Of a stretch of 64,000 nt of DNA, positions 9,729 to 45,428 are shown piece by piece. A program made the position numbers and the translations under genes. Origin of the DNA: Octopus sinensis (Eukaryota); the NCBI RefSeq assembly GCF_006345805.1, contig NC_043011.1:61702464-61766463 (forward strand), given 5' to 3'. A model generated the notes under the pieces. That model had not been told where the DNA came from and searched no databases. It saw nothing but the letters and a program-made list of their open reading frames with translations. Positions within the stretch are counted from its first letter, which is position 1. Every line of letters begins with the position of its first letter.

Positions 9729-9765
9729 GAACAATAAGAATATAATAGTATAGAAAATATCTCAT
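9729..9765 (-). CDS. Candidate first coding exon of G1, signal-peptide start MRYFLYYYILIV
   Basis: CCACG-ATG context shared with 45291-45324, hydrophobic 12 codons, canonical donor gtaagt in phase 1, shared upstream block. Confidence 0.6.
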
Positions 9766-9838
9766 CGTGGGCATTCGCATTTCAGTAAATATCTTCTCTG
9801 GAATATTTATATACATGTGACAATGTCTTATGTACATA

Positions 9839-9868
9839 AAATGACGTAACAGCTGTTTCCTCTCACTG
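9839..9868 (-). promoter_or_regulatory. Conserved upstream or 5'UTR block of G1 containing E-box CAGCTG
   Basis: 27/30 identical to 45399-45428; starts 74 nt from the G1 ATG versus 75 nt for G2. Confidence 0.5.
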
Positions 9869-10384
9869 TGAGAATATATACATTAGTTCCAAAGCAGAAA
9901 ATATGATATTTAACTGACGTATATAGCGATTTGGATGACTATGAAAACTATTTTAATAATCTACTTAAGGTGTCAAAATTTCTTTTCGTTCCAAACTTAG
10001 TCTATTAAAAATGTTTTATATTTTTTTTCCTTTTGTTGGAAACAGTTTTAATAGCCGGGATCAGAACATCTGTATCAGACTGTTGTATACAATGGAAAAC
10101 GTGTATTCATTTACATATATGCCAGTGTTCATCCGTACACTTGAAAAATGATTCTAATATTTAAATAATCATACTTATTCACCCATTTATTACGTATAGA
10201 CATCTATTGACACAATCACGGATGCCCGTAAATTTACCTATACATATATATGTGTATGAATGTATGAGTATATATATATATATATATATATATATATATA
10301 TATATATATATATATATATATATATATATATGTGTGTGTGTGTGTATGTGAGTGTGTTTGTGTGTCTGTATTTTTCCCCCGCCA

Positions 10385-10560
10385 TATCTTGACAATCGAT
10401 GTTTCGGTGTTTACGCCTCCGTAACTTAGCGTTTTGGCAAAAGGCATCGATAGAATAAATATTAGGCTTACAAGGAAGAAGTCCTGGGATTGATTTGATC
10501 GGCTTAAGTCGGTGCTCCAGCATGACCGCAGAGAAATGGCTGAAACAAGTAAAATAATCA
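10385..10560 (-). mobile_element. SINE fragment (family delta)
   Basis: Reverse complement of ttcagtcatttgactg.ggccatgctggagcac seen at 35850-36030 and 57265-57450. Confidence 0.7.
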
Positions 10561-11225
10561 CAGAAAGAAACAAGGAGAGAAAATAAAGAATGTGTAGTGG
10601 CTGGCGAGCCATCATGATATATATATATATATATATAGATTTATATAGATAGATAGATAGATAGATAGATAGATAGATAGATAGATAGATAGATAGATAG
10701 ATAGATAGATAGATTGATTGATAGATAGATAGATAGATAGAGAGATAGATAGATAGATAGATGTGACCAGCGATGTGTAGCAGCATCTGATAGCCTGGTC
10801 GGTCACGGTGACGGTGATATATATATATATATATAATTCATAAATGAGGGCAAAGGAAAAAAATTTCTAATGCCAAATATGCCGAAAAATTGGACATATT
10901 GTCCATTAACCATATAATTTTTTCACAAAACGCACGCTACTCGAAAAAAGGTCGACAGAAATTTCTAAAAAATTCCATTATTACCATATCGGACCGATTT
11001 CAGAGTTAGCTACTAAGAGCCCTCTCTTCGTCAGTGATACATGTGGCAGAAGAAATAAATGAGATACTTACTCGCACCCATGGAAGAAGCAAACAGTAAG
11101 TCATGAGCACAACTAAGTACGCCAAATACATCCAAAATAGAAATACTCCAGCCCATTCAAGACACGTGCAATTTGAACTGAGGCTCTCACAGAGTGGGAG
11201 AGTCCGGAAGTGAACGCTTAAATTT

Positions 11226-11301
11226 ATATCTAATGAGGATAAAATTTCTTTCGAAAAAAATATTTCGAAAATTTCGAAAGAATTTTATCCTCATTAGATA
11301 T
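11226..11301. repeat. ~30-bp inverted repeat (hairpin) between G1 and G3
   Basis: atatctaatgaggataaaatttctttcgaaa ... tttcgaaagaattttatcctcattagatat, with one 1-nt indel between the arms. Confidence 0.85.
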
Positions 11302-11976
11302 ATATATATATATATATATATATATAGAGAGAGAGAGAGAGAGAGAGAGAGAGAGAGAGAGAAATATATATATATATATATATATATATATATATATATA
11401 GAGAGAGAGAGAGAGAGAGAGAGAGAGAGAGAGAGAGAGAGGAGAGAGAGAGAGAGATAGTGAAAGAGAAAGAAAGAGATAGACACAACTAACTGCATTT
11501 GAAACTCTTCAACACGTCAAATAATTCGATAAAATGATTCTCAATGCTATCACATCATTAATGATGCCACAACATTGTACCACACTACATCATACATAGC
11601 AAATGTCGTTTTGCTTGAGCTAAGCTAAACAGCTGTTAGATTACTTTCAGGATGGTTGTGTATTTGTGTGAGAGCGTATGCATGTGTGCCTATATATATA
11701 CATATATGTATGTGCAAGTTTATCGTAATATATATCTATATATATATGTACGTATATATATGTATATCAGTAAATATACATATGAATATATACATACATA
11801 CAAGCATATAAATGTACATGCATACATACATACATAAATGCATATAAATACACATGGATATATATATATATATATATATATATATATATATATATATATA
11901 TAATACACACATGCATGCATCCATACATATACGTTATGTTATATGACTGGGCATCGATTTAACACGAATATACAAG

Positions 11977-12013
11977 ATGAAATGTTACCTCAGTTTCTGT
12001 TTTCTGGTTCTTG
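11977..12013 (+). CDS. Candidate first coding exon of G3, signal-peptide start MKCYLSFCFLVL
   Basis: ATG plus 12 hydrophobic or Cys codons, canonical donor G|gtgagt in phase 1; same length and phase as G1 exon 1. Confidence 0.6.
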
Positions 12014-43004: not shown

Positions 43005-43043
43005 TAATCGGAATGTGTCCCCAGCATTTCTGCAGAGCAATCA
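43005..43043 (-). CDS. Candidate second exon of G2: (V)IALQKCWGHIPI
   Basis: Acceptor gaaattatttcag, donor gtaagt, 39 nt phase 1-1; completes signal peptide MKYCLCFLFIFVIALQKCWG. Confidence 0.5.
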
Positions 43044-43625
43044 CTGAAATAATTTCAAGAATATAAACACGGAATGATGAAAATAATTCAGAAATATAGT
43101 AACGGTTTAAAATGATGAAATATGTGTATCATACAAAATTTATACAAATCATACACATCGTTTGAAAACATGAGTCTGTAGAATTGGATGAGTAAAAATT
43201 TCTTCATGGTAATGTTGTATTTAAACGGCAATATGTATCTAAGCTAAAAGAACGTCATCCCAGCAGTAAGTCATGAGAATATTAGATATATTTCGCCCTT
43301 CACGAGGCTTGTCATGAACGTGCAGCCTTCTCGAACGATTTTCTTTTCTCGATACATAAGCAAACGCGAATAATTATTTCATTGATATCGATGGGTAACA
43401 GCCGAACGGTAAAAACTCGGTAAAGCCAATTGAAACAGTATTGAATTAAAGCAGAGACCTTAACAGCCCAGCAAGAATTCATTCTGCAAAAATTCTTTAA
43501 ATATAAAGGTTCGAATGGCTTGGAATGCGTGTGCTTATCAGTGTAAGCATGCACACGAAAAAACACGTGCGTAAGCTAATGCACATATGTGTGTGTGTGT
43601 GTGTGTGTGTGTGTGTGTGTGTGTG

Positions 43626-44160
43626 AATGTGTGTGTGTGTGTCTCTGGAGGCGCAATGGCCCAGTGGTTAGGGCAGCGGACCCGTGGTAGTAGGATCGCG
43701 GTTTCCATTCCCAGACCGGGCATTGAGAGTGTTTATTGAGCAAAAACACTTAAAGTTCCACGAGGCTCCGGCAGTAGGTGGTGGTAAACCCTGCTATACT
43801 CTTTCACCACAACTTTCTCACACCCTTTCTTCCTGTTTCTGCTGTACCTGTATTTCAAAGGCCCAGCCTTGTCACACTCTGTGTCACGTTGAATCTACCC
43901 GAGAACTACGTTATAGGTATACGTGTCGGTGAAATGCTTGGCCACTTGCACGTTAATAAATTATCTGCGACGTCACAGGTGCCAAGCTGTATCAGCCTTT
44001 GCCTTATCCCTTGGATAACATTGGTGGCGGCGTGGAGAGGGGAGGCCAGTATGCATGGGCGAATTCTGGTCATCCAAAAACAAACTTTCCCAGACTTGTG
44101 CCTCGGGGGTAACTTTCTAAATGTAATCCCATGGACATTCATGACCGAAGGAGGTCTCAC
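43626..44160 (+). mobile_element. tRNA-head SINE, near full length (family beta)
   Basis: A box TGGCCCAGTGG, B-box-like GTTTCCATTCC, body matching the fragments at 3060, 5225 and 6150. Confidence 0.8.
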
Positions 44161-44859
44161 ACACACACACAAACATATATATATATATATATATGAGTGT
44201 GTGTGTGTGTATATATATATACATATGTATATAAGCATGTGTGTGTGTGTATACATATACATACACACACTCATATATATATATATATATATATATATAT
44301 ATATATATATATATATATATATATTGTAATCACGCAAAACCTAACCTGTCTGATTGATTCATTTTCCACAACGTTATATTTTGCGACTATTATCTTTTCT
44401 CGTTATTCACCTGACGATTTCATTTTTATATTACGTAGGCTAACAAAACGAACCTAACTCGTCAGGCATAAGTCAGAATGTGTTAATATGTAATTCCTGG
44501 CATTAATATTGATCGCACGTCTTCCAAACCGTTCAACCTTTATATCTAAACAAGGGGTTTGAAGTTTTTATCTTTACATTGTGAACATCATTTAAAGTAC
44601 TCAGCATAAAAATATGCACTGATAATTGTTTCTTGCTCCGAAAACACGTGGCTAATGATGTTTTCATAACGAGCTTTGCGTCAACAAGCAACTTAAGACT
44701 ATGATCACATGATCGTTTTTGTTTGCAAGCCAATACGCTAGTACATGAGAAAATAAAAACCTAAAATCGGGAAGAAGGTTGATGCAAAATTGAAAGTTGA
44801 TTAAACGGTAAAGAAAGAAAATTAGGATTACGTCGTGTTTCCCAGTAGAAGGCATAAAT

Positions 44860-45150
44860 AAACTAGTTGTTGTAGAGGAATCCAACAGAGACGGGTGCTA
44901 ATTTTGCCATACAATTTCTCAATCGGATGAGAGTGGTAGACTCCAGTTTCCCCAAAAGAAATTTGACCATCTGCTTGCATTTGCTGAAAATTTCGATTCT
45001 GGAATTAAGTAGAGTGGTGGAATCTTTGTAGGTCATTCTGCTACGCAAAAGTTAGTTTGCTTTAATCCATCTACATATGGCATGGGTTTCTCTACGATTC
45101 TCCACTTGATTGTATGCGGTGTACAGTTGGGCTTCAAAACATCATACCTG
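44860..45150 (-). mobile_element. Penelope-like element remnant, GIY-YIG C-terminal region
   Basis: Minus-strand TIKWRIVEKPMPYVDGLKQTNFCVAE then TYKDSTTLLNSRIEIFSKCKQMVKFLL, resembling the PLE pattern KW.I...A.PY....K.CNLCL.EK...LLN.RSE..SKC.H..KFLL. Confidence 0.7.
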
Positions 45151-45290
45151 ACTCGGTAAATTAGTGACTATACATTCGTGTGTGTGTGTGTGTGTGTGTG
45201 TGTCTGTCTCTTTTTGATAGATTAAATGATAATCATATATTAAATACAAACAATTATGAAGATAAAAACATTTGTCTTGTAACTACTTAC

Positions 45291-45324
45291 CGAAAATAAA
45301 GAGAAAACACAGACAATATTTCAT
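45291..45324 (-). CDS. Candidate first coding exon of G2, signal-peptide start MKYCLCFLFIF
   Basis: In-frame stop 15 nt upstream, CCACG-ATGAAATATT context matching G1, donor G|gtaagt in phase 1. Confidence 0.6.
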
Positions 45325-45398
45325 CGTGGATTTTCTTTTTCAATGACTGTCCGATCATGAAATGTTCCCTCACTTGTCTCCATTTCTTTTATATTCAG

Positions 45399-45428
45399 AA
45401 ATGATGTAACAGCTGTTTCTCCTCACTG
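45399..45428 (-). promoter_or_regulatory. Conserved upstream or 5'UTR block of G2 with E-box CAGCTG
   Basis: 27/30 identical to 9839-9868. Confidence 0.5.

Follow-up and report, generated by a model that had tools for sequence, protein, structure and literature searches.

Small secreted-protein genes in which a phase-1 intron splits or follows the signal peptide are a common metazoan architecture, found in many toxin, hormone and antimicrobial-peptide genes. In well-studied families of secreted peptides, the signal peptide is usually the best-conserved coding part. A second described arrangement is that of the protocadherin and UGT1A clusters, in which clustered variable first exons carry a conserved promoter element, while composite proximal promoters that pair an E-box with a cyclic-AMP response element (CRE)/bZIP site occur in cell-type-specific secretory or neuroendocrine genes. 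Here we describe three candidate first exons, termed A, B and C, in a stretch of 64,000 nucleotides (nt) from Octopus sinensis contig NC_043011.1 (positions 61,702,464 to 61,766,463; hereafter the window, from whose first letter all coordinates are counted). An earlier note on this DNA had read them as the first exons of a family of small secreted-protein genes with split signal peptides.

By sequence comparison, the three mini-exons are true, locally duplicated paralogues, and their relationship lies far beyond chance. All three are found exactly where the earlier note had placed them, each ending in phase 1 at a consensus donor:

9765-9729, minus strand: mini-exon A, 37 nt, ATG to C as read from the sequence, encoding MRYFLYYYILIV, phase 1
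9723-9728, minus strand: donor-like GTAAGT of A, a conservation peak in the A-C alignment
11977-12013, plus strand: mini-exon B, 37 nt, encoding MKCYLSFCFLVL, phase 1, placed in a three-way alignment
12014-12019, plus strand: donor GTGAGT of B
45324-45291, minus strand: mini-exon C, 34 nt, encoding MKYCLCFLFIF, phase 1
45290-45285, minus strand: donor GTAAGT of C

Each mini-exon comprises an ATG, a lysine or arginine codon and 9-10 hydrophobic codons (11-12 codons in total) before a phase-1 GTRAGT donor. The ATG, an A at -3, the K or R at codon 2, a frame open to the donor and the intron phase are common to A, B and C, and any difference among their lengths (37, 37 and 34 nt) is a multiple of 3. 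A and C share a module of ~200 nt with 67% identity (blastn E=1e-17), which extends from a CAGTGAG ~105 nt upstream of the ATG to ~60 nt inside the intron. With a profile of A and C, nhmmer returns B as the next-best match in the whole window, in register from ATG to donor (E=7.5e-4). A 12-mer, AAACAGCTGTTA, is found with at most one mismatch at only three sites in the 64 kb, against 0.43 expected, at 9858-9847 (minus strand), 11627-11638 (plus strand) and 45418-45407 (minus strand). Each site lies upstream of one mini-exon and on its strand, 93 nt from the ATG in A, 94 nt in C and 350 nt in B. The local paralogy proposed in the earlier note is therefore borne out and strengthened. Profiles built from all three copies found no fourth copy of the module in the window.

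The strongest conservation between A and C lies in a promoter block, not in the open reading frame (ORF). Identity along the alignment peaks three times: at -107..-76 (CAGTGAGRRGAAACAGCTGTTACRTCATTT, 27/30 identical), at -12..+12 (CCACGATGARATATT, which includes the ATG), and at +30..+48, where the donor GTAAGTA is located. The first peak contains a perfect palindromic E-box, AACAGCTGTT, followed directly by a CRE/bZIP-like site, TTACGTCA (TTACATCA in C). In the troughs that separate the peaks, identity drops to 25-40%, close to saturation. Permutation of the match vector gave p=0.007 for the best 30-nt window and p=0.0009 for the best and worst windows taken together. The ATG context is common to the copies, as are the donor and intron phase that the earlier note had pointed out; the upstream promoter element had gone unnoticed there. 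Its features are as follows:

9839-9868, minus strand: conserved upstream block of A, CAGTGAGAGGAAACAGCTGTTACGTCATTT, the E-box palindrome and then the CRE/bZIP-like site, 27/30 identical to C
9804-9811, minus strand: TATAAATA of A, 46 nt upstream of the ATG, read from the sequence, putative promoter role
11627-11638, plus strand: E-box 12-mer of B, 350 nt upstream of the ATG
45399-45428, minus strand: conserved upstream block of C, CAGTGAGGAGAAACAGCTGTTACATCATTT, with its E-box 12-mer at 45418-45407
45386-45393, minus strand: canonical TATAAAAG of C, 69 nt upstream of the ATG, putative promoter role

At the position of C's TATA box, A has a weaker, degenerate TATA, TACATAAG. B retains the E-box, ATG context, frame and donor, and the bZIP-like half of its element is degenerate (TTAGATTA). 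Neither the promoter block nor the pattern from block to ATG was present in the metagenome contigs scanned. The conserved islands are thus the signals on which a first exon depends for its transcription, start of translation and splicing. We infer that, since an old duplication, selection has maintained at least A and C as units of promoter and first exon.

A and B lie in a head-to-head arrangement, with 2.2 kb between them (9765 vs 11977) and 1.77 kb between their E-boxes. An inverted duplication between them was sought, and only microsatellite matches were found. Approximately 100-230 nt past the donor, both A (9552-9500, minus strand) and C (45208-45176, minus strand) have a (CA)n microsatellite, which may be a coincidence in a microsatellite-rich window or may represent an intronic CA-repeat element.

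Compared with the described systems, the three copies resemble small secreted-protein genes in having a short first exon (5′ untranslated region (UTR), ATG, basic n-region and hydrophobic h-region) that ends at a phase-1 consensus donor, and in being clustered, locally duplicated and fast-diverging. In contrast to well-studied families of secreted peptides, their promoter block is better conserved than their ORF. With the protocadherin and UGT1A clusters they share first exons that each come with a promoter bearing a conserved element, and the absence of paralogous sequence beyond the first exon; the exons of those clusters, however, are large, in tandem and on one strand, whereas the exons described here have 34-37 nt of coding sequence, B is inverted and no constant exons were found. 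The CAGCTG E-box adjoins a TTACGTCA-like site ~25 nt upstream of the TATA box, which recalls E-box plus CRE/bZIP promoters at the level of motifs only. If A, B and C are what they seem, they would represent an ordinary kind of gene architecture.

The earlier note had also joined B and C to very small second exons that would complete a split signal peptide. Both sequences (35 and 39 nt) are as it had read them, yet the gene models built on them do not hold. The proposed second exons, a repeat that bears on them and a further candidate are listed here:

12832-12866, plus strand: proposed second exon for B, 35 nt, leaving phase 0 and giving ...ACMYALCTLPTA; unsupported
43043-43005, minus strand: proposed second exon for C, 39 nt, leaving phase 1 and giving ...VIALQKCWGHIPI; repeat-borne
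10345-10572 (minus strand), 35831-36060 (plus strand) and 57248-57466 (plus strand): clear copies of an interspersed repeat of ~230 nt that resembles a short interspersed nuclear element (SINE)
~43070-42981 (minus strand) and 15837-15975 (plus strand): decayed copies of the SINE-like repeat
3586-3494, minus strand: speculative candidate exon of phase 1-1, VEFYVNPDKCLAREFCPEVLRYLEDNRKKD, on the strand of A and C and downstream of both

Pseudo-exons compatible with phase 1 (a YAG acceptor, at least 60% pyrimidines upstream, an open frame and a GTRAG donor) occur in the window at 0.57 per kb per strand, and about 0.5 candidates are expected by chance before B's second exon (0.8 kb searched) and about 1.3 before C's. 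The two second exons, found at this chance rate, are not homologous to each other and leave different phases (0 vs 1); judged from these features, they are not equivalent exons of paralogues. No homologue of B's second exon exists in the window. In C, the second exon together with its acceptor aligns to the SINE-like repeat, the profile of which matches 43070-42981 (E=0.003). The consensus of this repeat starts with an acceptor-like TTGTTTCAG followed by GCCATGCTGGAGCAC, and for this reason the repeat seeds pseudo-exons, C's second exon among them. The earlier note had named a match to a high-copy repeat as evidence against its exons. By that measure, C's second exon is undermined by its location in a repeat remnant. 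The modules of the first exons lie outside all the repeat families of the 64-kb window.

Further searches downstream of the mini-exons were no more productive. Ab initio exon scoring fails to separate real exons from background here, and the candidate at 3586-3494, which has no match in the database, does not stand out from ~15 other pseudo-exons of the window. The 11-mers common to all three downstream regions amount to one 12-nt stretch, which is microsatellite-like. A weak peptide match between 2258-2079 and 45004-44831 (E=0.001) was rejected, as it is not significant over ~400 queries and runs through a donor. A unique segment of ~1.1 kb (8200-9300), located 0.4-1.5 kb downstream of A's donor, has a GC content above its surroundings and several open frames on both strands, without any Pfam or database match.

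The explanation that we tentatively prefer, at a little short of even chances, is that A, B and C are the 5′ ends of an unannotated, lineage-specific octopod family of genes or transcription units, possibly with signal-peptide first exons. They would be diverged copies of a single module that unites an RNA-polymerase-II promoter with a first exon, in which the E-box AACAGCTGTT abutting the bZIP/CRE-like site would be followed by a TATA box, a short 5′ UTR, an ATG with A at -3, a basic residue, 9-10 hydrophobic residues and a consensus phase-1 donor. A signal peptide or membrane anchor would begin in the first exon, and later exons would be too short or too diverged to recognise, or located elsewhere. 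Transcription, splicing, translation and secretion of these modules are all predictions.

Whether A, B and C are protein-coding first exons is roughly an even call. In favour of coding, the ATG island is conserved with its A at -3, and in all three copies codon 2 is basic and the frame is open to the donor. A methionine, a basic residue and at least seven hydrophobic residues, as in the n- and h-regions of a signal peptide, are present in A, B and C, although T-rich sequence would give the same. In A, in-frame upstream ATGs at 9780 and 9774 would extend the product to MRMPTMRYF.... A c-region with small residues at -3 and -1 and a mature domain would have to come from a second exon. Secretion is suggested by a T-rich hydrophobic ORF of 11-12 codons; both coding and secretion are putative. 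The label of secreted peptides given in the earlier note is not established; there is no third-codon-position bias, and an alternative frame is equally open.

Several observations weigh against this preferred explanation. Differences between A and C fall on codon positions 1/2/3 in the ratio 3/4/4 (a hand count on alignments of 11-12 codons, which has little power), and frame 3 is equally open in A, B and C. Coding constraint is not demonstrated, because substitutions are spread evenly over codon positions and a second frame is open in all copies; likewise, no protein-level purifying selection was detected on the ORF of A and C. The hydrophobicity of the mini-exons follows from the T-rich sequence. 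C has an out-of-frame upstream ATG at 45358, B has out-of-frame upstream ATGs as well, those of A are in frame, and in B the proximal promoter is interrupted by (TA)n and TATG microsatellites between the E-box and the mini-exon. No downstream exon or peptide common to A, B and C was found by blastn, blastp, blastp-short on repeat-masked fragments or k-mers, which returned SINE and microsatellite matches only. When the exon peptides were concatenated, no protein in a database of 5.8 billion sequences had even three 5-mers in common with them, and a blastx-like search with downstream stop-free fragments (>=28 aa, 4978 aa in total) gave no match at E<=1e-3.

These protein-database negatives carry moderate weight only, because octopod coverage looks thin, with some Octopus bimaculoides and Argonauta proteins included, and because ORFs of the window are absent. 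An exact-sequence look-up of ten window ORFs and one O. bimaculoides match found none on record. Pfam searches of selected ORFs near A and C gave no match, and a search of the literature found nothing relevant. The exclusion of IL-17, insulin, PLA2 and i-type lysozyme in the earlier note agrees with these results, as frames next to A and C have no Pfam match and the downstream fragments match no protein.

A first alternative, which we consider unlikely, is that the modules are promoters and first exons of non-coding transcripts (long non-coding or regulatory RNA), or conserved cis-regulatory modules, with the mini-ORF incidental to T-rich sequence. This would account for conservation being strongest in the promoter block rather than the ORF, and is consistent with the missing codon-position bias, the equally open frame 3, the upstream ATGs and the lack of a protein match. 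It leaves unexplained, however, why the ATG lies at the centre of the second conservation peak and all three copies have an A at -3, why codon 2 is K or R in each, and why lengths differ by a multiple of 3 with the frame always open to the donor.

Rather less likely is the possibility that the copies are functionless relics, either fragments of an interspersed repeat or copies that a mobile element made of a cassette of promoter and first exon. Transposable elements and microsatellites saturate the window, and the homology is short (about 200-250 nt), as might be expected of such relics. Yet there are only three copies in 64 kb, none of which overlaps the repeat families of the window; the homology fades gradually at both ends with no defined terminus; and neither transposable-element ORFs nor shared terminal repeats are present, so that the many copies, termini and ORFs of an interspersed repeat were not found within the 64 kb. 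In addition, conservation is concentrated on functional signals separated by saturated sequence, a pattern that speaks for selection after duplication.

A more novel reading is of similarly low probability. Here the copies would be octopod-specific, unannotated genes for very small secreted or membrane micro-proteins, or a promoter-choice cluster of alternative signal-peptide first exons, with a shared E-box/bZIP promoter and mature parts too fast-evolving or too short for homology to be seen.

It is more doubtful still that a single minus-strand gene uses A and C as alternative first exons, each with its own promoter carrying a conserved element and spliced in phase 1 to shared downstream exons that lie outside the window or to the left of 9.7 kb, with B an inverted, decaying duplicate. 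A and C do lie on one strand (35.6 kb apart) and have one intron phase, conservation between them does not reach beyond promoter and first exon, and no paralogous exons of its own lie downstream of C, whose sole nearby second-exon candidate is repeat-derived. The microsatellites that disrupt B's promoter would also suit a decaying duplicate. Against this reading, B is on the opposite strand, yet its ATG, open frame and donor are intact. The search turned up no constant exon, as the candidate at 3586-3494 does not rise above background, and the region matches no database protein.

Spliced-leader RNA genes were considered and rejected, as the exons differ by ~35%, have no Rfam match in the window and are not in tandem. 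Rfam and tRNA scans of the window returned no family and no tRNA, and a spliced-leader RNA, small nuclear RNA or tRNA-SINE explanation is therefore not available.

The string of ATG, hydrophobic codons and donor is on its own a weak pattern and only partly beyond chance, because look-alikes occur elsewhere in the window. Across the 64 kb, an ATG mini-ORF of 9-16 codons precedes 17 GTRAGT donors, and 8 of these 17 are hydrophobic, against 0.7 expected under a crude Markov model; four of the eight are microsatellite artefacts. That A, B and C are likewise chance look-alikes, unrelated T-rich ATG strings ending at GTRAGT and comparable to the unrelated ones at 14484, 29939 and 54477, is scarcely credible, being refuted by the A-C match (E=1e-17), by B in register and by the confinement of the 12-mer to the three upstream sites.

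The surrounding window is AT-rich (about 35% GC) and crowded with microsatellites and transposable elements. Its recognisable ORFs are:

17672-18016, extending to 18203, plus strand: Mos1-type mariner transposase fragment, HTH_48 (Pfam, E=1e-19)
36232-36588, plus strand: second helix-turn-helix-containing ORF, with helix-turn-helix/transposase-associated Pfam matches below threshold only
52711-53367 and 63730-63999, minus strand: RVT_1 reverse-transcriptase ORFs
62586-63701, minus strand: zf-RVT ORF

The zf-RVT ORF shares 95% identity, over a short stretch, with an Octopus bimaculoides UniRef protein and 59% with a protein of Argonauta hians. It forms part of a GC-rich (48%) fragment of a long interspersed nuclear element (LINE) with zf-RVT and RVT_1 (62586-64000, minus strand), whose nearest database relatives, at 63-78% identity, come from metagenome-derived contigs (JGI, ENA). 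One NCBI relative is labelled ‘MAG: zinc-binding domain-containing protein [Herbaspirillum sp.]’; this entry seems to be eukaryotic (cephalopod-like) sequence that contaminates a bacterial bin. Three dispersed repeat pairs are also present: 34761-35427 and 49181-49852 (672 nt, 95% identity), 39159-39886 and 58180-58917 (744 nt, 87.5% identity), and 22138-23066 and 51263-52183 (938 nt, 78% identity), the last of which is the 3′ part of a LINE at 50.4-54.7 kb. The ~500 nt at 60813-61316 are their own reverse complement at 86% identity, forming a large palindrome or inverted repeat, and are adjoined by a tandem array at 61765-62155.

For gene models in this AT-rich, repeat-rich genome, a SINE-like repeat that supplies a ready-made acceptor is a reason for caution. 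Models stitched together from micro-exons need transcript evidence, because chance alone yields convincing micro-exons at ~0.6 per kb per strand. Should the modules prove to be transcribed, they would mark cephalopod genes missed by standard annotation and ORF tracks, and would provide a compact promoter amenable to testing (an E-box directly next to a bZIP site, and a TATA box) conserved across old duplicates.

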